In this document: in pieces, positions 13,314 to 27,519 of the stretch | How positions within the stretch are numbered: the stretch's first letter is position 1 | Layout: the number at the start of each line of letters is the position of its first letter | Origin: Haliotis cracherodii | Taxonomy: Eukaryota | Assembly: GCF_022045235.1 (NCBI RefSeq) | Contig: NW_027266264.1 | Coordinates: 21,576,001-21,640,000 of the forward strand | Length of the DNA: 64,000 bases | Direction of reading: 5' to 3' | Made by a program: the position numbers and the translations under genes | Notes under the pieces: generated by a model | What the model was told of the DNA's origin: nothing | Database searches by the model: none | Seen by the model: only the letters and a program-made list of their open reading frames with translations

Positions 13314-16300
13314 CAGGACATGTTGGGTAATTTGTTCTCGAGACACAGAAATCAGATACGCTGCTCCGAATGCTTCGGACGGTCTACAGATAATTTAGAA
13401 ATGTGATATGTGAGAAACCACAGCCCACATGGAGAGTGTGTTAGATTTTGACAGAGATGTATCGAATTGGAGCAAAGGATGTTATTTTGATTAGATTGAA
13501 CCATATAAATCTAAGTTAAGAAGTCACATGAAACTATTTATCTTGGTTTCTATTTTTTCGTCTGAAACGAATGATGCATTAAAAAAATCAAATTCATTGT
13601 TTTAATTTAAATATTAATTCAAGTGATTCTGTAACGGAGAGATCGGATCCATACGGGTTGTTGCTGCACCATCTTGAATCTCCTAATTGTCATTCATACG
13701 CACAATGTTTCTGTCATCGTATCCAAATTGCGGGATCGATGCGCATGGTATCAATCACTTGAGTGTCTGGTCCAGACTCGATTATTTACATACCACCGTC
13801 CTATAACTGGAACATTGCTGAGTGCGGCGTTAAACATCAAACAAACAAACAAACCTGTTTACTAAGGTGAGATGCTTTTGTGGAAAAGAGGAATATGAAT
13901 GAAAGTTGAGTTTTTTTGTTGAATGTCAATAGAATCACAATGTCAGATGAACAAGCTACATTTGAATCATGGCATCGTTCAATATTAACACGCATGCAGA
14001 ATTGCAGCTTCATTTGTGTATCATCTTCAAAGCAAAGGGATGCATTTTAAGAGAACTTAAAATGGCGGCCATTTTGGACATCAGAGAGCAAGCATGTGAA
14101 GTACATGTTTCAATGGTCCTGCGTTTTCTCAGGAGAAGTTAGTTCTTTTCGGATCACAAGCAGGCGACAACATAAGCTCACCAGAGCTAATTATGGATGC
14201 ATTACTCTACATTATCATTTTATCCTAAATTCAAATTCTGGAACTTACATTGCAAGAACTGTATTTTAATGAATCCTTCGAGATTGTAGGTAGAATCGTG
14301 CGTCCTTGGGCGAATGTTATAGTTTTCCTATAATTAATACAGTGTTAAACCAACCTTATTAATTGAAATGAATGCATCATTTACCGGATTGTACACCCTG
14401 TTAAGCTTTAATTAACACTTTTCATACACAGTGTTGAGTAAGAATACTCCAAAAACCGATAATCTGAAAGGAATTCGAGAATAAGCTTTAAAATCGCTAT
14501 GTACTTGTCATTCTGTGTGCAGGGAACATGCCTTATTGCAAGTTGTATATGTACATTTACGGATCAATTTCTGATATGTTTTGCTGCATCTTAATTATAA
14601 CTATTTGCAGCCGAAATGTTTGTGCTGATTTTAGGCATAAATCAAGAATCAAGAGAACAAGAACTTTTTCCAAGATTGCGAAAGTTTGGTTTGTAAGTTT
14701 GTTGCCTAAAGCCACACGCCAGGACCTGTGTATAATCGAATTTTGTTGCAAGTTCGCCTCAGTTTGTTCATCGTTTAACGCCACAATCAGCAACAATCCA
14801 GCTACTGGTATATGCCGGCTGCCTGTATCTTTCATAAACATTATGAACACATTGTGCTGATGGTTTTGACCTAACGTTCGTCTGTACGTTGCCCCAGTTT
14901 TCTTTGTTTTGTTGTTTAAAGCTGCTCTCAGCAATATTTCAACTATATATCTGTAGTCTGTAAATAATCGAAAATGTATTGTTGAGAAATCATACAAAAT
15001 GTATACACACACATACATACGCTGTTACCACCAAATGTACCACCAAATTAAAGTGTAATTAATACAGGGTGGATTCTCAAACAAGGATTTGCTTGCATTT
15101 ATGCAGTCTTATAAAGGAATCCAGTTCAATTCTGACGAAACATTTAATTTTTCAATTTTGTACACCACTATCGCACTACGACTTCATTCCTTGGTCGATT
15201 GGGCATTTGTCATGACACGTTGTGAAAACAGCAGTTTTGTTTTTTCATTCCCCTCCAATGATTTTTTTCTGTTAATAAAAAGTGTTTTGTTTATGACATC
15301 CATTGAAACGTCCTCTTGGTAACGCTTCATACGTTCATATGGCTACCGTCGGGCTACTGTGTGTGGTTATTGTGTGTGAATTGCATAGATGCTCTGATTA
15401 CTTTGGTAATTAGATAAATCGATGCAGTGGTGAATTCTACAAATATACATACATATACTTGCATTAGTGAGTGAGTGAGTTAAATTTTTAAGTCACATCG
15501 GCAATATTTCAGACATATCGTGACTATCAATAGTTAAACATAATACATATATTGAAACTTGTATAAAAACCTGTCAACGAAGGACAGTAAAATTACTAGA
15601 TTCATCGCAGAAAAATATATAGAACTAGTACGGAATTATAACAGAGAATAGCACTATATAAATATACTTTGAAAGACGTGGTCTTACATACCCTCTCAGG
15701 GGGGCAATAATTTTACACTACTTCAACCCCCTTCGAGGATACAGCCACTAACAATCTCAGTTATCAAATTTATTTTACCAATTATAAAAACTATATTATA
15801 TACAAAACATATCAATCAAAATTTAAGTAACAATTCAATTTCTTTTAAAAAGTCAATAATTAAATGAGCACTGATATTAAAAAAGATCCTTTAAGGATGA
15901 AACTTTGAAATATTTATCCCTTGTGATGGAAAAATCAACACAATCAAGCAGGACATGCTTGACGGTGATTCTTTCATCACAAGGGATACAAAATGGAGGA
16001 TCTTCACCTTTCAACAAATATTCGTGATTATATCGACTATGGCCAATAACGACATCGTTGTAAAATGACCTCTTCAAATCTGGACTGACAGCCAAAGTAG
16101 GTGTAACCAATATTTGGTTTAATTTCATGTAATTTATTGATATCTACTTGGGTGTCCCACTTCTTTTGAATCAGATCACGGATGAAAGATCTAATTATAG
16201 TTTTATAATCACTGTATGGGATAAGAAGTGGTGTCATAGATTTGGTGAGAGCTGCCTTAGCAGCAGCATCGGCCATTGCGTTACCAGTGATACCGACATG

Positions 16301-16457
16301 GCTTGGTAACCAACAAAAGACGATATCATACTGGCCAGTAGCAAGATCATTATGTAGTTCTATTATTTCACGTAAAAGTGAATGTTTACAAAATATATTT
16401 TTAATTGCCTGAAGACAGGAAAGTGAATCAGAAAAGTTAATGAACCATTTATGTTAA

Positions 16458-16668
16458 TGTTATAACCTAGCCCTCAGACTAGAGACAAAACCAGAGGCGT
16501 TGGGGACAGACTTTTATTTTCCAGCCACATGGCCGGTCCATACGTCATAGCCGAGTGACAGCACGTGCGGATTACCTTCATAGGCACGTGAGGTATTCAT
16601 ACGCGTTACTCTCACAGTACATAGTTCTAGGGTACGTCAGGTAATATAGTACTTATCAAGATATTACA
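16458..16668 (-). repeat. Gypsy 3' LTR (211 bp)
   Basis: Direct repeat of 20878-21080 with 8 substitutions; TG...CA ends; adjacent PPT. Confidence 0.93.
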
Positions 16669-17262
16669 TTCCTCCCTCTTTAGATGGAAACAGTTCTAAA
16701 CAAAACATATCTACATTAAAGGTGCCAAGGTGCTTCTCAACATTTGTACACAAAGAAAGCTATAGACAAAAATCATTCTCTAGATTTAGTAGGTATCTGC
16801 CATAAGAGAAATATGTTAACATCTACTGTTCAAGTAAACTTTACCTTAACCCAAAATAACATATGAGTTCACTTCAATCTCATTAACCAATTACTTCCTA
16901 ACAAAGTCCTCAAAATATCTTGGTTCCCGTCGAGTCCTCTTAGAAGATCTACTCAGAACGGGAGATTTAACATTGCTATTGTCTGTTGATAGTACAATCT
17001 CTGAAGCAGGATCTTGTATCCTCTCTGACACGTGATCCTTCTCTGGATAGTCATTGATAGCAGGTATCTCGACATCGTGCGTCTCTGGTAGAGCAGATTC
17101 TACCTGTTTATCTGAATGAGAGTCAGTATTGCCTCCGGGTACTTGGGTTTCTCGAGTACGCACATGATCCTGATGGCGCCTCACATTTCGACCATCAGAC
17201 AGTTCTACCTCAAACGATACTTGACCTGTCCTGTTCGAGACTGAACCCGGAAACCATTTCAG

Positions 17263-18552
17263 TCAATTTCCAAAGTTCTTAACATACACAGTGTCTTGTT
17301 CCTTCATACTTCTGTCCTTCACATGTAGGTCATGTTGAATATTCTGTCTCCATTGACTCTTCTTTACTGTCTGCTGTTCAGAAGGATGAGTCAAGTCTAG
17401 ATGTGTTCGTAGTCTCCAGTTCACCAGAAGTTCGGCTGGTGTTTGTCCAGTAGTTGTCTGGGGTGTTGTTCTATAGAGGAACAAGAATCTGTCGAGACGA
17501 GTCTGAATATCCGGACCTTGTACCTTCTTTATCCCCTCCTTGAATGTCCTTACTGACCTTTCAGCGAGACCATTGGACGATGGTTGATATGGAGCTGTCT
17601 GCACATGGTGAATACCATTCTTTTCCATGAATGCTTTGAATTCCTCACTAGTGAAACAGGTACCGTTGTCACTCACTAACATCTCGGGTAATCCATGGGT
17701 TGTGAACACTCTACAAAGGACTGCCACTGTAGCTGAAGATGTAGCTGAGTGCACAACAACAACATCTGTCCATTTACTATATGCATCCACAATCACCAAG
17801 AACATTTGACCAAGGAATGGTCCGGCATAATCAATATGCACACGAGACCATGGTCGCTCAGGCCACTCCCACGGGTGTAGGGGTGCCTTAGCTGGTATCT
17901 GCTGCATTTGCTGACACACCTCACACTTTTTCACTGTTGACTCCAGAATTGAATCCATGCTAGGCCACCACACATAGCTACGAGCAAGTGCCTTCATCCT
18001 ACTGATTCCAGGATGTGCCTCATGAAGTTCACGAACAATCCTATCCCGACCTGGCGGGGGAATCACTACACGGTTACCCCACAACACACAGCCATCCTGT
18101 ACTGTCAGCTCATCACGGCGACAGTAGTATGGCTTCATTTCTGGGTTTTCACAGAAATTAGGCCATCCACACTGCACATATCTCAACACTGTTGACAACA
18201 CAGGATCCTGGCGCGTCCATGAACGAATATGTTTGGAGGTCACATGTGTAGTATCCATCAGTTCCAGAAGCATGATGTATTCCGGAGGTACAGGTGTTTC
18301 TTGAATACTTGGTTTTTCTTTCACAGGAAGTTGGCTCAGACAATCCGCATTGGCGATCTGTGATCCTGGTCTGTAGACAAGTTCATACTCATAAGCAGGC
18401 AATGTTAGTGCCCACCTCTGAATCCGTGCTGATGCCATCATTGGTATCGCTTTGGTCTCAGCAAATAATCCTAACAACGGTTTGTGATCAGTCTCTATAG
18501 TGAAATGATTTTCTGCCAGGTACTGATGAAATTTCTTCACACCAAACAGCAT
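17263..18552 (-). pseudogene. Gypsy RNase H C-terminus + integrase reading frame (429 aa open segment of broken pol)
   Basis: TDHKPL, HPGISRMKALARSYVWWP, CEVC, WSRVHIDYAGPF, SDNGTCFTS, PYQPSSNGLAER. Confidence 0.9.
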
Positions 18553-19358
18553 TGCTAAGCCTTCCTTTTCCAGTTGTGAATAGTTTTTTTCAGCGGAGTT
18601 TAGGGAGCGTGATGAATATCCAATGGGACGATCGCCTCCCTCTTCAGTACGATGAGACAGTACCGCACCAACTCAGTAGGGCGATGCATCACAACAGAGA
18701 ATGAGTTCGTTCTTCGCATCATAATGAACGAGAACTTTATCAGAACATAGCAGTGACTTGGATTTCTCAAAAGCTGACTGTTGTTGGCTTGTCCACTTCC
18801 TTGGTACTTCTTTCTGTAACAGTTTGTGTAACGGTGCCAGAGCAGTGGAAAGGTTTGGCATGAACCTTCCATAATAGTTCAGCATACCCAAATAGCTTTT
18901 CAGTTCTGTCACATTCCGCGGAGGTGACGCTTCCTTGATGACCTCGACCTTTTCAGCGACTGGTTGGGGACCCTCTCTATCCAGACGGTATCCAAGATGC
19001 ACAACTTCTGTTGCCATGAAGCTGCACTTTTTTTCCTTACGAACTCTCAGACCTGCTGCCGCTAGTCTCCTCAGAACTTCATCTAAGAGTGTCAAGTGTT
19101 AATGCCTCGAACGGCCACCAATCAGAATATCATCAATCCTGACCAGAACTTGTTCAAGACCTTGTAGGGTATTCTCCATGATGCGCTGAAATATACCAGG
19201 AGCTGATGACAAATGGCAGACGGTTATACCGAAAGAGTCCTTTATGATTATTTATTGTGACGTACTGCTTGGAATGTTCTTCCAACAAGACCTGCTGGTA
19301 AGCTTGACTTAGGTCCAACTTAGAATAGAACTTTTCTCCTCCTAATGTTGCGAACAGG

Positions 19359-20624
19359 TCATCTGTCTTTGGACACTTTGTTCACAGTCACTTTATAGTC
19401 ACCACAGATTCTAATACTCGAATGGGACTTCAACACAGGTACTATTGGTGCTGCCCATTCAGAAAACTCTACAGCTTCTATTGTACCATTACTCTGTAGG
19501 CGATCAAGCTCCTGTTCAATCTTCTGCTTCAATGTATATGGGACTGGTCTTGCTTTATGGAAGATCGGTTGGGCATTCTTGTCAACATATATCTTTGCTT
19601 TCGTTCCTTTGAACGTACCCAAACCATCCTTGAACACTTCAGGATGCTTATCCAACACAGTTCTCAAACTGCTTTGCGAATCCTTAGCAGTCACATGTTT
19701 GATTATATTCCAATCAACATCAAACACATCAATCCAGTTACGTTCAAACAGACTAGCACGGTTCCCTCGGGCAACTAATAGGGGCAGACTCGCAGTCACT
19801 CCTTGAAAACCAACCTCCACCATCACCTGTCCCGCAAGATCAAGCTTATTTCCGGTGTATCCAAGGTATAATTTAGTCGTAGGTGTCACAGTCAAGTTCT
19901 CTACACACTGTTGAAGATGTGACAAAGTCTTTTCACTCACAATGGATACCGCAGCCCCAGTGTCAAATTCCATCTTCAACTCTTGACCGTTGACTTGTAC
20001 TGGTACATAAACTGGTTTGTTCACTGAACCAGAAACCATGAACATCTCATATGCTTCACTCACATCCACGACCTCGACTCTGTCTCCCACCACGATGTGA
20101 AACTCTCCTCTGACCATTTCCCCTCCTGTTGAGACATTCTGTGATAAATGTCCAACAAGTCCACAAGAGTAACACTCCTGATCTTTAAAACGGCATGTTG
20201 AAGGGTCATGTCTTCCGCCACAACGAAAACATGAAGAACTGTAGTTACCTCCCCTGGTTGGTTTGTTCGTAATAAAGTTGATGACACCAGTGTCACTGGA
20301 TATTGCAGTTTGTTTCTGAAGATCAACAGAATTTTTGTCAGCCGCTTCCATTGATCTTGCTATGGCAACGGCTTTGATGAATGTCAAATCATCTTCTGAC
20401 AGTAACCTGGATAACATTTTCTGTTTGTTTATACCGCAAACGAATCTGTCCCTCAGCATGTCGTCAAGGAATGCTTCATAATCACAAAATTCAGTCAGTT
20501 TTCTCAATACAGCAACAAACTCACTGATGGTCTCGTTGGGCTTCCGTACTCTCGTGTTGAAGTTGTAGCGGTGCACAATCTTCGACGGTTGAGGGTTGTA
20601 ATGGTCTTTCAACAAGTTCCTCAA
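19359..20624 (-). pseudogene. Gypsy gag-protease-RT N-terminal reading frame
   Basis: LRDRFVCGIN, zinc knuckles, FDTGAAVS, WAAPIVPVLK, IRICGDYKVTVN. Confidence 0.88.
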
Positions 20625-20877
20625 AACTTTTTGACGTCAGGCTTTTCGGGGCGAAGTAAGTCTCTTATTAATCCATAAGTTTTACCTCCCACGGAACTGG
20701 GAGGTCTGACTTTTGCGTTCAGTTATGGAATTCGCCTCGAAAAAGATCTCGGCTCGCTCCGCATATTGGCTCCAATCTTCGACTGTTTCGTTAAACTCGC
20801 CAAGATTCCCGTATACAGACGATGCTATCTCGACTGCGCTTCCAAACTTCGCAAAACTTCAGGTTTATACCTCGGCG

Positions 20878-21080
20878 CCTAGCCCTCAGACTAAAGACAA
20901 AACCAGAGGCGTTGGGGAGAGACTTTTATTTTCCAGCCACATGGCCGGTCCATACGTCATAGCCGAGAGACAGCACGTGCGGACTACCTTCACAGGCACG
21001 TGAGGTATTCAAACGCGTTACTCTCACAGTACATAGTTCTAGGGCACGTCGGGTAATATAGTACTTATCAAGATATTACA
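20878..21080 (-). repeat. Gypsy 5' LTR (inner end deleted)
   Basis: Matches 16466-16668; the terminal tgttataa and the start of the PBS are missing. Confidence 0.9.
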
Positions 21081-24000
21081 GTTTAGATTGAGTATTTATA
21101 TATTTTAGAGCAGTTAATATTGCCTGTGATTCTTCTGAAAAAATGGAACCGTCATTCGGTAATCTTGATGATAATGGTTCTGGATCCAATGACAGTGGTG
21201 CTGGCAACAGCGCCACCATCCTTGGATCCATCTGTGATTATGGACTTGTAAGTATCATAAGTGTTCCTTAATTCATTATATTGTTGTTGATAAATTAGTT
21301 GATTTGTTTCAGATTTTTTTAATTTGGTTAATGCGAGATCGACCTCTGGCCTTACCATTTGCCAAGGAGGTGATGAAAATATCTTGCAGTTTAATATTAG
21401 CGGCAGACATGGCAGACTGGATTTCGATTCCAAGTGGTGGAACAAGAGACGATTTTTTATTATAAATATCTTGGTAAAGAGGATTAAAGACGCAATTAAA
21501 AGCTGGATTTGACGGATTAGAATATCATTTAGTGACATATTGTAACGATAATTTCAGACGGCGTTGTTTAAGAGGAGGTTCATCCGCTTCTACATACAGA
21601 CTGTGAATTGGAGACGTCCTAAAGGCTCCATGGCAAAGCCTCAGGCCCTGATGATGGATAGTATCCAGTTTTTGTAAGTTACTTTTGCAGGCTCCACCAT
21701 AGACGATGGAGCCATAATCGAGTTTTGAACGGATCAATGACCTGTTCAAGTGTAAGAGGGTTGTTTGATCCCCTTCCCACTTAGAATTAGAAACTACTTT
21801 CAACAAATCGAGTGCCTTCAGGCATTAAGCTTTAAGGTAATTAATATGCGGAAGGAAAGTTAAATGACTATAAAAAATAAGGCCCAAGAACTTGGCCTCT
21901 TTTTGCAATTTTGATAGGGGTGCCATCTAAATATAGTTCAGGGTCCTTATGCGGCTTATATTTTCTGCAGAAATGTATACAGTTGGTTTTTGATTTCAAA
22001 AATTTAAACCCGTTTTCGAAGACAGATTTGTAACTGCCTCTCTATTGTATGCATATTTTTTCCACGACAAGAAACATTAAAATCATCCACGAAAAGTGAT
22101 CCATCTACTGAATCACTTAAACCTTTGAAAGACTATTTATTTTTATACTAAATAAAGTGACAGACTAAATACTGCCTTTTTAGGACATCCTGATCATGAT
22201 GATAATGATCAGACAGGGTAGAAACCATGCGGATCTGAAATTGTCTGTCTGTTAAACACTTGGATATAAATTCAGGCAAACGGTCTCTCAATCCAAAATC
22301 ATGTAAATACTTGAAAATACCGTGTTTCCACGTTGTGTCATACGCTTTTTCTAAATCGAAAAAGATAGACACTGCAAGCTAGTTATTAATGATTGCAATT
22401 TTCACAAATGATTCTAACCGTACTAAACGGTCAACGGTACTGCGATTCTTTAGAAAGCCACACTGAATATTTGTAATTAAATTATTTGATTCCAAGTACT
22501 ATGTTAATCAATTGTTGACCATGCGTTCCATGGTTTTGCAACGCAACTGGTGAATGAAATTGGTCTATAATTCTATGGATCACTGTGATCCCGTCCAGGT
22601 TTCGGTATGGGTATAACTATGGCATCACGCCAGGAAGAAGGAAACTTACCTGATGTCCATATATCATCAAAAATTAACAAAAGGGTTTCTAAACACGGTT
22701 CTGGTAAGTGCTTCAGGAGTTGATAGTGTACATTATCAGCTCATGTAGCAGTATCATGAGCTTGTCCAAGAGCTGCATGAAGTTCATGGATCAAAAATAT
22801 TTCATTATAATCTTCCCCATTATCTGATTTAAATTTAAAGTTTTCTTTTCCTGCTGTTTTTGAATTTTTGGGAATTCAGGGACATAATTTGAGGAAGAAG
22901 AATGTTTAGCTAACGTTTCACCTAGTTTAATTGCAATAACCAATTTATTAGTTAATAGTTCATCCCCATTCTTAAGATGGTTAACGCTACATTTAGAACC
23001 CTTTCCTTTAATTTTCTGTATCATGTTCCATACCTTGGACATGGGCGTTCGTGAGTTTATCTTGGAAACATAATGTTGCCAAGATTGGCGTTTATTTTGT
23101 TTAAACGTACGCCTGGCATTAGCATTTAAGATTTTATATTTATTCAAATTATGGACCATGGGATGGCGATGGAAATAGTGTTCAGTCTTTTCCCATGCCT
23201 TCCTAGCTTGTTTGCAGTCTTAGGAATACATTCATCTGCTATTTTGTTTAATTCATCTGAAAATAATTGTACAGGATCAGTTGCGTCAATAAATAGATCA
23301 GGTTTTAATTTATTGGATGCAAGCATTTCAAAGAAGTTCCTTCTTGTTAAAGGAGGAACATCTGAAGGTAAGACAGGTTTTAAAATAGTTGGGAAATGAT
23401 CACTGCCACAGAGGTCTTCGTTGACGGACCATTCAAATTCGTATAATAAATCAGAGTGAGTGAGTGATAAATCCAGAGCAGAGTAGGTACCTGTGCCGGG
23501 ATGTAGATATGTGTTTGAGCCATCGTTATAGATACATAAGTCATTGTTGGAAATGAAATCTTCCTAAAGTTTCCCCTTATTATTTGTCTGAACACTTCCC
23601 CAAATCGGATTGTGCCCATTTAGATCACCAATAATGATACAGGGCTTTGGAAGTTGATCATAGAGAGCTTGAAGTTCAGACTGTCGGAGAGAAGAAGATG
23701 GTGGGATATAAAGCAAGCACAATGTAAAAACAATGTGCAAAGTAAACACGGATTGCAACAGCCTGAAGGGGAGTAGTAAGTTGAACGGGGCTAAGGATGA
23801 CGCCGTGTTTCATTAGAATTGAAGGACCTCCAGTGGCTTTAGCACCAGGAGGTGAAAAGACTTTGTTGGAGGTATAACCTCTAATATCAAATTTGTCAGT
23901 ATCCTTATAATATGTTTCCTGTAAACATATGGCAGATGTCTTAAAATCCTGAATTAAGAGTTGTAACTCATTATAATTATTCCTAAGTCCTCTACAGTTC

Positions 24001-24492
24001 CATTGAATTAAATTTGATGAGTGAGTCATGGTGGTTCAATTGGTGATCTCTCACCGGAACTTGAGTAAGATGAACTCCTATCGCTACTGCCTGACGATAG
24101 AGTTACCTCCATGTCTAAAGCACTAAAGGAGTTGTGAAGAGATACTTCCGAAGAAGAGGGGGTGCTAGGTGATTGTTTCCTGTTTAACCTTTGTCTTTGC
24201 TTTTTTGATAATTTACGTTCCTGAACAGATGCTTGTTCAGGAGATGCCTCAGATGAGGTCTGAGTCTCAGCCTGAACACAACATGGTGGTGATGCAGATT
24301 TACTGTCAGAGATTGGAAGATCAATGACAGAAGCACTTGCAACAGGTCAGTCAGAATTGATAATAAAAGTTTGAAAATAAATGAATCTACATCACAATAC
24401 CTTTATGTAACATGAATAATCAACTGCGCGTTGAAGTGCCCGAAATGGAACAGTTATAATGAATTCTAATAATGTCGTATCAATTGTTTTGA

Positions 24493-24910
24493 TTTTTCAT
24501 TCCCATCCAATGATTTTTTTCTGTTATTAAAAAGTGTTTTGTTTATGACATCCATTGAAACGTCCTCTTGGTAACGCTTCATACGTTCATATGGCTACCG
24601 TTGGGCTACTGTGTGTGGTTATTGTGTGTGAATTGCATAGATGCTCTGATTACTTTGGTAATTAGATAAATTGATGGAGTGGTGAATTCTACAAATATTC
24701 ATACCTATACTTGCATTAGTGAGTGAGTGAGTTAAATTTTTAAGTCACATCGGCAATATTTCAGCCATATTGTGACTATTAATAGTTAAACATAATACAT
24801 ATATTGAAACTTGTATAAAAACCTGTCAACGAAGGACAGTAAAATTACTAGATTCATCGCAGAAAAATATATAGAACTAGTACGGAATTATAACAGAGAA
24901 TAGCACTATA
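24493..24910 (+). repeat. Duplicate of 15241-15660 (host flank + LINE 3' tail)
   Basis: About 420-bp near-identical direct repeat spanning the LINE 3' junction. Confidence 0.92.
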
Positions 24911-25012
24911 CATAACGATACAAGATACAAACAGGCTATAGATCGCCAGCAGCTGAAGGTAGACCACCATGCTAGGGTCCATGGGGACTTACAGTACTTT
25001 TGCTACCTGCAT

Positions 25013-25212
25013 GGTGCTAGGTGATTGTTTCCTATTTAACCCAATGCCTTTGCTTTTTTGACAATTTACGTTCCTGAACAGATGGTTCTTCAGGAGATGC
25101 CTCAGATGAAGTCTGAGTCTCATCCTGAACACAACATGGTGGTGATGCGGATTTACTGTCAGAGACTGGAAGATCAATGACAGAAGCACTTGCAACAGGT
25201 CGGTCAGAATTG
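25013..25212 (+). repeat. Duplicate of 24161-24360 (LINE ORF1 C-terminus)
   Basis: 200-bp direct repeat with roughly 13 differences. Confidence 0.9.
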
Positions 25213-26717
25213 ACCCATGTAATATCGGTTTGACACAGAACCGATGAAAAGTTTTTAGCAGATTTGGTCACTGCAGCAGAATAATTTAGTGTTGAAGGAG
25301 TTGTTGATTGACTGGCAACAAGCTTCCTAGCGTCTGCAAAAGAGATGTTTTTTTCACATTTTAGATTCAGTATTTTGGTCTCGGTTTGAAATACTGGGCA
25401 GGATTTGGAAGAGGCCATGTGTTGGCCTTCACAGTTGGCACATTTGAGATCTTGAGTACAATCCGCACTGTCATGGTTGTCACCACAACCATGACAAACA
25501 ACAGGGCGTCTACAGGTTTTCGAACCGTGACCAAACTTTTGACATTTAGTGCATCGGAGTGGATTGGGGACATACACCTCCACTCCGATGTTGACATAAC
25601 CTGCTCTATTTGAGTTTGGAACCGATGGCCGAGCAAAAGTGAACAAATATGTGTTCGTTAGGACAATATTTGATTTGTCATCCTTTCGGGTGAAACGTTT
25701 GACGGCTTGTACTCCTTGAGTTCAGAAACAATTTCATCTTCCGTCATGTCTGAAAGGGAACATGTCCTGTCACGAACAATGCCACGACAAGAGTTCAACG
25801 TCCTATGCTTAGAAACAGTAACCTCAATATTAGCAAAGTGTTTGATAGATAATAAATTGAGAGATTGTTGTTTCCTCGAACATTCCACCAGAAGAGATCC
25901 AGTACGCAATCGTGTGACATTTTTTACTTCTCCACAATATCCATGAATGGCTTTGGATATAGCAAAGGGATTCAACTTTAGCGGTTCATGATCTGTGGCT
26001 TCGATCACAAGGAATTGGGCCCAGGAATCAGGAGGAAGAGTATCAGCTTCATCAGAAGAACTTGAGTCTTACTGACGTCTTTTTGAACCAGAGTGTGAGT
26101 TAGCCATGATTATGTTGAAGTGATTCAGCAACCCTGCTCCCCACCCACCATGGAGTATCATAATAGACAGTGTTGTAATGCACCGGATCTCCAAGGTGCA
26201 AACACCAGGGCTACAGGGTTGTTATACTCCAGAAAATATGACACAAACAGCAAAATTTGTATATCAAAATAAGTGCCAGGCTGGTTCTGCCCATGACAAG
26301 AAATTGAATACATATTGAGTTTGGAGGTCAACATTACCAGATTGGCCCATGAGCCACCGCCCTCTGGCATGGGACATGCAATTTTGTACATATAATTTTT
26401 AATGAGAACATTCATTTACAGCATTCAAACATACAGAACATACTTAACATGAATGTTTTCCATACACAGGGCATGACATGACCAGCCGATTGATTTGAAC
26501 CGGGCCAATTCTACCACCCGTCTAGTTGAAGTAAGGGTCAAAGTGGTGTGTTGGGCAAAGGAACACTGTTCCTGGCTCCAGTGCCCTCAACCACCAGAAT
26601 TCCGTCCTCCACCCACACAGGGCCGCAACCTACGACAAACAGGTTCCCCAATTCGGTCGCTTTGTACGACCAGCAGTGGGGTGCTTTGGACATATTCTAC
26701 CCCGGGTCCTCACGGGG

Positions 26718-26775
26718 GAAGAGCTATAAGCGTTATCCAGCACTCACCACGGGGAGGTTGCTCTTCACGAGTGCC
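26718..26775 (-). ncRNA. HDV-like (nested double-pseudoknot) self-cleaving ribozyme at the LINE 5' terminus
   Basis: Minus-strand RNA GGCACUC GU GAAGAGC A ACC UCCCCGU GGU GAGUGCU GG AUAACG CUUAU A GCUCUUC. P1 GGCACUC/GAGUGCU with G1.U wobble, P2 GAAGAGC/GCUCUUC, P3 ACC/GGU, 7-nt L3, P1.1 CC/GG, catalytic C in J4/2. G1 directly abuts the TSD. Confidence 0.8.
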
Positions 26776-27519
26776 TATATACTTGCATTAAGGGTCATAT
26801 TTCGCGTGTGGTCTTCAAAATGGCACAATGTGTATCCGTGAAGCAAAAACTTCACGTATATGCTTTATATCAGGTCGGTGGAAGCTTATGTTAATCTTCG
26901 GAGTGATTGCAGTATCAAACTAATTTGCTTGGTGTTGCCTGTCACTCTTACCACCGTTTTCCCATTGGAGGTAAGACTGAATTTTAAACTAAACTAATAA
27001 AACATGACAGAACGCCTACTTTAAGAGTCTTCTATACAAATATAATTACAAATGCTGTAACAATATGTGGGCCACAAATGCAACAAAAAGTAAATGCTTC
27101 GTGGGCATTGGTGCCTCACTTCAAATGCTGCACGTCACTAACTTTTATTACGATTACAGACATTTGAAATTTCCTACGTAAAATGAAGCATTTGCTGACG
27201 TATCAAAGAGCCGAGATCAACACGTGCCCATTTCTGACTGTTCATATTCCAGGCCTATCAAAGAAAACCAGCACTCTGGAACAACCAAGCTATGTGTCCT
27301 ATTTAACTATTCAGAGCAATCAATAAGTATTTTAGATTACATACTCAAGATATGTCTTAGTGATGACCATGATGTTCTATTGTGGACGGTTCTGTTGTGG
27401 TCAGAATGCGTGTTGTTTGAGACGATTGACAGCCTGTGTGAAGACGTGTAGGTTCCATTATAAATCTATTGCAACATTTGCTGATAGTATTGCATGTATC
27501 TTGCTATCTATCACGTGAG

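Follow-up and report, generated by a model that had tools for sequence, protein, structure and literature searches.

A candidate P4-less HDV-like ribozyme at the 5′ end of an I-like LINE family in the abalone Haliotis cracherodii

A LINE on the minus strand of the window (by which we mean the whole 64-kb stretch of Haliotis cracherodii DNA that was analysed) begins with 58 nt that were read in an initial annotation as a compact HDV-like ribozyme. In R2, RTE, baggins and L1Tc elements, 5′ ends are known to be processed by HDV-like ribozymes (PMC6765202), and the locus raises the question of whether an RNA that is so short, and that appears to have dispensed with the P4 helix, could define the exact 5′ end of the transposed RNA of an abalone retrotransposon family. 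We approached this question through the anatomy of the window copy, the 5′ ends and conservation of its sister copies, and a comparison with related LINEs from metagenome contigs.

Anatomy of the 58-nt candidate and its host LINE

The 58-nt sequence as spelled out in the initial annotation is present on the minus strand, where it runs from 26775 to 26718, so that nucleotide n of the RNA has the window coordinate 26776-n. A covariance model that was built from abalone copies (R1) has exactly one match in the 64-kb window, and this match coincides with the candidate. The features of the candidate, its flanking target-site duplications (TSDs) and the LINE copy to which it belongs are as follows.

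26718..26775, minus strand: whole candidate minimal HDV-like ribozyme, 58 nt (R1 match of 89.6 bits)
26775, minus strand: G1, the predicted first nucleotide 3′ of the cleavage site
26769..26775, minus strand: 5′ strand of P1, GGCACUC, pairing 7/7 with 26739-26745
26767-26768, minus strand: J1/2, GU
26760..26766, minus strand: 5′ strand of P2, GAAGAGC
26759, minus strand: A17
26756..26758, minus strand: 5′ strand of P3, ACC (Rfam alignments put P3 at the same place)
26749..26755, minus strand: L3, UCCCCGU, which contains U21, C22, C23 and G26
26746..26748, minus strand: 3′ strand of P3, GGU
26739..26745, minus strand: 3′ strand of P1, GAGUGCU, with U37 opposite G1
26737..26738, minus strand: G38 and G39, the P1.1 partners of C23 and C22
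26731..26736, minus strand: 6-nt linker AUAACG, where P4 would be
26725..26730, minus strand: J4/2, CUUAUA (CUAAUA in the family)
26718..26724, minus strand: 3′ strand of P2, GCUCUUC
26776..26790, minus strand: 5′ TSD, TAATGCAAGTATAT(A), which adjoins G1 directly
15452..15466, minus strand: 3′ TSD, after the (ACTC)n tail, with 1 mismatch to the 5′ TSD
24704..24718, minus strand: second copy of the TSD, within a duplicated 3′-junction block
15467..26775, minus strand: the LINE copy, which reaches both ends of the family element but is dead, with broken ORFs

As had been proposed from the letters of the window, the helices follow one another in the order seen in HDV, and every pair can form in P1 (positions 1-7/31-37, 7/7), P2 (10-16/52-58, 7/7) and P3 (18-20/28-30, 3/3). 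The wobble expected in P1 is G1.U37, and the CC/GG partners of P1.1 are present as C22 and C23 of L3 and as G38 and G39. Two further nucleotides of L3, U21 and G26, correspond to U20 and G25 of HDV. The reduction of P4 was also borne out: only six nucleotides lead from G39 to C46 (26730), the predicted catalytic cytosine, and they contain no P4 helix. At position 24 of L3 the window copy has C and most copies have U, and the linker reads GUAACG or GUAGCG in most copies. Across the junction the family sequence CUGG-GUAAC matches CUGG-GCAAC of HDV, and the L3 sequence UCCUCGU and the J4/2 sequence CUAA match HDV as well.

The initial annotation had further suggested that the window copy is decayed from a form with CNRA in J4/2, and it pointed to two deviations, of which one stands. 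CUUA is indeed a private change of this copy (A48U, at 26728), its segmental duplicate L002 reading CUAA. The A17.A51 apposition, in contrast, is no sign of decay, A.A being the majority state of the family and being found also in a relative from a metagenome collection (L075, described below). We take A48 to be the equivalent of A77 of HDV. A nucleotide at a position of the A77 type makes A-minor contacts with P3, and A48U is predicted by this analogy probably to impair the ribozyme of the window copy. Judged by A48U and by the rearranged element with its broken ORFs, the copy in the window has undergone decay.

Searches with general models gave a mixed picture. At gathering thresholds (37-50 bits) the Rfam models RF00094, RF02682 and RF01787 yielded no match. 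When the scan was run at permissive E-values, RF02682 (the HDV ribozyme of F. prausnitzii) aligned with the window copy at 26686-26775, starting at G1, with 23 bits, and a majority-type copy scored 26.1 bits (E=0.01) with RF02682, 21.3 bits with RF00094 and 15.9 bits with RF01787 (drz-agam-1). All three HDV-class models converged on the same bases of the majority-type copy. The Rfam alignments retain P1, P3, L3, GG and GCUAA and score P4 as a deletion, and it is because P4 is missing that the scores fall below threshold. We also applied a strict HDV descriptor (G1, P1 7/7 ending in U, P3 3/3, L3 of the form UCCNCGN, GG, CNRA and P2 of at least 6 bp), which is satisfied by the abalone sequences and by L075 and which had 0 matches in 40 Mb of random sequence of window composition. 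The stability of the minimum free energy (MFE) fold is unremarkable (z = -0.13), a measure that is uninformative here because nested folding cannot score pseudoknots.

The family element to which the candidate belongs is ~6.2 kb in length (about 6.17 kb), with a 5′UTR of about 490 nt and the (ACTC)n tail. ORF1 is 474 aa long, and its alignment contains three C..C..H..C (CCHC) motifs; ORF2, which is 1232 aa long in the intact copy L031, carries an RNase H domain beside APE and RT domains, in agreement with the earlier description of an RNase H-bearing LINE. Because of the APE-RT-RNase H architecture and the CCHC-containing ORF1 we classify the element as I-like, an assignment that rests on domain architecture and under which Nimb stays a candidate label from the initial annotation.

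In the window copy, nt 1-1611 of the element are found at 26775-25178, the LINE resumes at 24193-21081, and the 3′ part is found at 16455-15467. An LTR-type retroelement is nested in ORF2 (16456-21080, minus strand), with 203-bp direct repeats (16466-16668 and 20878-21080, 96% identical) and ORF fragments that match aspartyl-protease and RT_RNaseH_2. Meanwhile, a 425-bp block inside the ORF1 region (24486-24910) is a duplicate (97%) of 15234-15658, which comprises the 3′ end, the TSD and the downstream flank, and 201 bp of ORF1 are likewise duplicated (24161-24360 versus 25013-25213, 93.5%). These duplications look like a scar of rearrangement or unequal recombination. Two matches to a Tetrahymena C/D snoRNA model (25157-25209 and 24304-24356, minus strand) lie within the duplicated ORF1 segment and, at ~23 bits where the threshold is 75, were taken as chance. 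On a larger scale, the contig has three copies of this insertion, all with one and the same upstream flank (G000:C1 21602775, 21511690 and 21430397; L001-L003), at a spacing of 81-91 kb and an identity of 94-99%; they represent a large duplication, segmental or tandem, of which the window is a part.

The 5′ end and its conservation in the abalone genome

The family is abundant, its copies in the genome of Haliotis cracherodii numbering from hundreds to thousands: a genome-wide search with the covariance model placed at least 131 of 150 scored candidates at the maximal score of 93.6 bits, and BLAST with the first 216 nt returned 1779 candidates in the genome. The abalone loci whose letters were read are L001-L056, and all sequences cited here are natural copies, none of them a consensus or a repaired element.

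In the window copy G1 lies directly against the TSD, as had been noted, with no base between 26775 and 26776. The initial annotation had raised the possibility that other full-length copies start at unrelated positions. Instead, G1 is the first base, and GGCACUC the start, of all 46 independent copies, the upstream flanks of which are unrelated to one another. TSDs of 12-13 bp adjoin G1, with no extra base, in five of the six full-length copies examined. Because the 46 copies share this start and the TSDs adjoin G1, the transposed RNA starts at G1. So exact a start fits cleavage by a ribozyme, and it is predicted equally well by a fixed start of transcription.

Within the 58 nt, the nucleotides of the predicted core hardly vary. 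J4/2 reads CUAA, in keeping with CNRA, in 45 of the 46 copies (the exception being the window copy), C46 is unchanged in 46 of 46, and U21, C22, C23 and G26 of L3 are essentially invariant, with single private changes only. Pairwise identity amounts to 96.6% over nt 1-58, to 92-93% over nt 59-300 and to about 67-71% in the distal 5′UTR and ORF1, and abalone subfamilies that have diverged in ORF1 to a DNA identity of about 70% still have an unchanged core in the candidate. The result was identical for 20 loci that had been picked by ORF1 similarity and not by their 5′ end. Variants common to at least three independent copies are confined to columns 24, 40, 43 and 51 of the 58, which represent the N of L3 (24), the linker (40 and 43) and the nucleotide opposite A17 (51), all of them unpaired and outside the core; the linker positions vary freely and without covariation. 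By our own arithmetic, the four variable columns would all coincide with unconstrained positions by chance with a probability of about 0.009; the estimate assumes, by our own count, some 19 of 58 positions that the HDV model leaves unconstrained.

The pairing of P1, P2 and P3, on which the earlier proposal depended, is kept in the other copies as well. The only helix changes in abalone are C7U and A14G, each of them single and each preserving its pair as a wobble; otherwise the helices are invariant across the 46 copies. There is consequently no covariation to be seen inside the abalone genome, and the evidence for structure comes from comparison across families.

Nor is the conservation specific to a ribozyme, since it stays high as far as nt ~300, and over nt 59-300 it could reflect a promoter or some other function of the 5′UTR. 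This pattern bears on an alternative explanation, which is that the 58 nt are an internal promoter or 5′ head and that the 5′ end is a start of transcription rather than a product of cleavage. The exact and invariant 5′ end would suit a fixed start site, the strong conservation extends far past the ribozyme, and a promoter role has been given to a conserved ~70-bp head of Haliotis SINEs and Nimb LINEs (PMC4758252), although that role was assigned from position alone.

Relatives that retain P4

A search of metagenome contigs with an ORF1 profile yielded 80 related loci. Among these 80, R1, which encodes only the P1 and P3 pairs, found a single match, at L075:63 (26.8 bits, E=2.7e-5), on the metagenome-collection contig JAAUYE010073327.1. 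The segments of this sequence are, in order, GGGGUGU, A, GAGAGC, A, GCC, UCCACGU, GGC, GCACCCU and GG, then a P4 of 44 nt, then CGAAA and GCUCUC. It is like the abalone ribozyme in its short J1/2, its A.A junction and its P2, which is of nearly the same sequence and one bp shorter, whereas it differs in having P4 and in the sequences of P1 and P3. The latter differences from abalone include double compensatory changes, four in P1 and one in P3, that keep the pairing.

Because R1 matched only L075, a second family required a model of its own. This model, R2, identified canonical ribozymes with P4 in 11 contigs at 63-137 bits (L086, L087, L096, L101, L104, L108, L114, L115, L119, L125 and L128), of which four were outside the training set. 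The ribozymes lie 450-900 nt upstream of ORF1. Repeat homology begins at N1, and one contig starts 2 nt inside the ribozyme; as the copies share no sequence upstream of N1, the ribozyme marks the 5′ end of the second-family element. P1 consists of G/A-CCCCCC with GGGGGG-U/C, or of a 6-bp version, and the variants of P3 (GCC/GGC, ACG/CGU and GCG/CGC) and of P2 (CCUACU/AGUAGG, CCUACA/UGUAGG and CCUCC/GGAGG) all pair. J4/2 reads CUAA, CAGA or CUGA.

The second family and L075 thus resemble abalone in the 5′-terminal position of the ribozyme and in its core (an L3 of the UCCNNGN type, GG and CNRA). The second family differs from abalone in the sequences of P1, P2 and P3, and the P4 of the relatives measures from 44 to ~90 nt. 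ORF2 of L075 is 49% and that of L087 47% identical to abalone ORF2 along its entire length, and the APE-RT-RNase H domains agree; for this reason we regard both as LINEs of the same clade. The clade accordingly presents a natural P4 series, from ~80-90 nt through 44 nt to none, which is useful for gauging what P4 contributes.

When all types are considered together, both-sided changes that preserve pairing are found at six of the seven positions of P1, all seven of P2 and two of the three of P3, and none of these positions has a non-canonical pair in any type; the count is partly circular, because several of the sequences were found with a descriptor that demands pairing. Cleaner evidence of covariation comes from L075 and the L104 group, which were found by covariance models without P2 pairs. 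Helices were tabulated by script from a separate parse of each ribozyme, since a cross-family MAFFT alignment gapped P1 and mis-registered P2, as did alignment to a covariance model.

Descriptor matches in L091, L110/L112, L124 and L128:1792 and on the minus strand were rejected as false positives, with a P1 of 6/7 and an atypical L3. Among second-family copies, the cleavage-site pair is G.U, A-U or G-C (L119:3068-3212, L128:658, L087:1070, L125:819 and L101:701), the A1-U37 state recurring in two contigs, and in L119 U replaces the catalytic C (GGUUAAG). Copies with such variants of the cleavage-site pair or the catalytic C are probably decayed, although the recurrence of A1-U37 qualifies this.

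Taken together, the anatomy of the core, its invariance in abalone and the covarying ribozymes with P4 in LINEs of the same clade support the original HDV-like reading, and the comparative evidence is in favour of an HDV-like ribozyme that is under selection. A promoter head offers no reason for P1, P2 and P3 to remain complementary when their sequences have been replaced, as they have in L075 and the second family, and it leaves the HDV identity of L3, GG and the cytosine of J4/2 unexplained. We therefore consider it unlikely that the 58 nt are a promoter head instead of a ribozyme; by analogy with Pr77 of L1Tc, it is possible that a promoter head coexists with ribozyme activity.

The abalone ribozyme appears, from these comparisons, to be derived from LINE ribozymes with P4 of the L075 and L087 type. 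Its linker, GUAAC-G, resembles both HDV's CUGGGCAAC and the sequence GCAAC...GG that flanks P4 in the relatives, which suggests that the abalone form arose by a clean deletion of the P4 hairpin. Such a loss might in principle have inactivated the ribozyme and left a remnant of the fold in some other RNA role, such as binding of ORF1p or RT, translation or stability. P4 is absent from every abalone copy and kept in the same-clade relatives, and the Rfam scores are all sub-threshold, as would be expected of a remnant. However, 46 copies from different subfamilies show no or almost no variation in C46, G1.U37, the P1.1 partners, U21 and G26, features that a dead ribozyme would hardly retain, and naturally occurring, minimal delta-like ribozymes without P4 are catalytically active (PMC10879173). 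An inactive remnant is, in our judgment, quite improbable. Finally, the possibility that an unrelated LINE 5′ end resembles the HDV fold by coincidence, with which the MFE z value and Rfam E-values near 0.01-1 would accord, can be set aside as exceedingly improbable, given that the strict descriptor drew a blank in random sequence, that three HDV models converge on a fold starting at the first nucleotide of the element, that LINEs of the same clade have homologous ribozymes and that nested MFE folding is blind to pseudoknots.

Proposed cleavage at G1 and relation to known systems

On the strength of these sequence comparisons, we think it likely that the 58 nt form a minimal HDV-like ribozyme that cleaves 5′ of G1 during transcription and so defines the 5′ end of the template. 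A copy could be transcribed from any upstream promoter, and the nascent RNA would fold into a nested double pseudoknot, with P1 on P1.1 and P2 on P3. C46 in J4/2, the equivalent of C75 of HDV, would then catalyse scission 5′ of G1, and the element RNA would be freed with a 5′-OH and would start exactly at G1. It is this RNA that would serve as the template to be copied into new insertions. We infer the catalysis, the 5′-OH end and the dependence on read-through transcription.

The proposed ribozyme is like the HDV-like ribozymes at other LINE 5′ ends (PMC6765202, PMC3185411, PMC3774820) in its position at the first nucleotide of the element and in its double-pseudoknot layout, G1 site and J4/2 cytosine, which in abalone are predicted. 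It would also share with the ribozymes of R2, RTE, baggins and L1Tc-ingi elements their presumed role, which is to free the element RNA from a co-transcript. Unlike them, it has no P4, is only 58 nt long and resides in a gastropod I-like LINE. The initial annotation had supposed it to be undescribed in this clade, and indeed we found no report of HDV-like ribozymes in molluscs, Haliotis, Nimb or I-like LINEs in the open-access literature.

Absence of P4 has precedents of another kind. The drz-Mtgn and theta ribozymes, like the abalone candidate, have no P4, are about 50-60 nt long and bridge P1.1 and J4/2 with a short linker, and nearly 99% of P4-less delta-like ribozymes are found in Caudoviricetes phages, often after tRNA genes (PMC10879173). 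The abalone ribozyme differs from the theta ribozymes in its setting, which is the 5′ end of a eukaryotic LINE flanked by a TSD and not the 3′ end of a phage tRNA. Thus, the 5′-processing job, the HDV fold and natural variants without P4 were known already, and what is new is a P4-less candidate in the LINE 5′-processing class, in an I-like LINE of abalone.

Should cleavage occur, this RNA would rank with the smallest HDV-like ribozymes found in nature and would constitute a minimal ribozyme inside a highly successful eukaryotic retrotransposon. Ribozyme-defined 5′ ends would then extend to molluscan RNase H-bearing I-like LINEs and, via the relatives, to the LINEs of the same clade on the metagenome contigs. 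A practical use lies in annotation, where the 58-mer gives a precise mark of full-length 5′ ends in a genome.

The candidate may also explain a 5′ head module that was described in 2016 and was then presumed to be a promoter. This head of ~70 bp is found in Nimb-17_LMi, I-3_DR and RTE-9_CPB and in the LP-SINEs of molluscs, Haliotis among them (Matetovici et al. 2016; PMC4758252), a study in which the L1Tc ribozyme is mentioned only as an analogy for the LP head. The LP head resembles the abalone 58-mer in its extreme 5′ position, to which its conservation among Nimb-clade LINEs and SINEs is limited, and that the two are the same module is an idea we hold tentatively and with some doubt. The LP head is distributed over Nimb LINEs of insects and fish, a turtle RTE and SINEs of abalone, periwinkles, oysters and scallops. 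Were the identity true, it would mean that LINE and SINE families of different animal phyla have repeatedly exchanged a minimal, portable, self-cleaving cassette whose job is to give those families a defined 5′ end, and the minimal delta-like ribozymes would gain a large eukaryotic reservoir.

Lastly, we note a second conserved RNA module directly 3′ of the ribozyme (window ~26640-26717, minus strand; L031:186-265), which contains two conserved hairpins, GUCGUAAAAGGCGAC and GGGCAACCUGUUUGCC. It is present in relatives at L057:9-87, L063:56-132 and L064:1311-1387. L063 and L064 have no recognisable ribozyme upstream of the module, an observation that weighs against the ribozyme reading; L057 and L060 share the module on contigs that begin at or within it, and what lies upstream is not judgeable there. 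A different abalone repeat (L018:~1195-1330) has a divergent module, with the stem AAGAUC/GGUCUU, and is without a ribozyme. The stem of the downstream module covaries, taking the forms GUGGAC/GUCCAC, GUGGAA/UUCCAC and, in L057, GGGGCC/GGCCCC.
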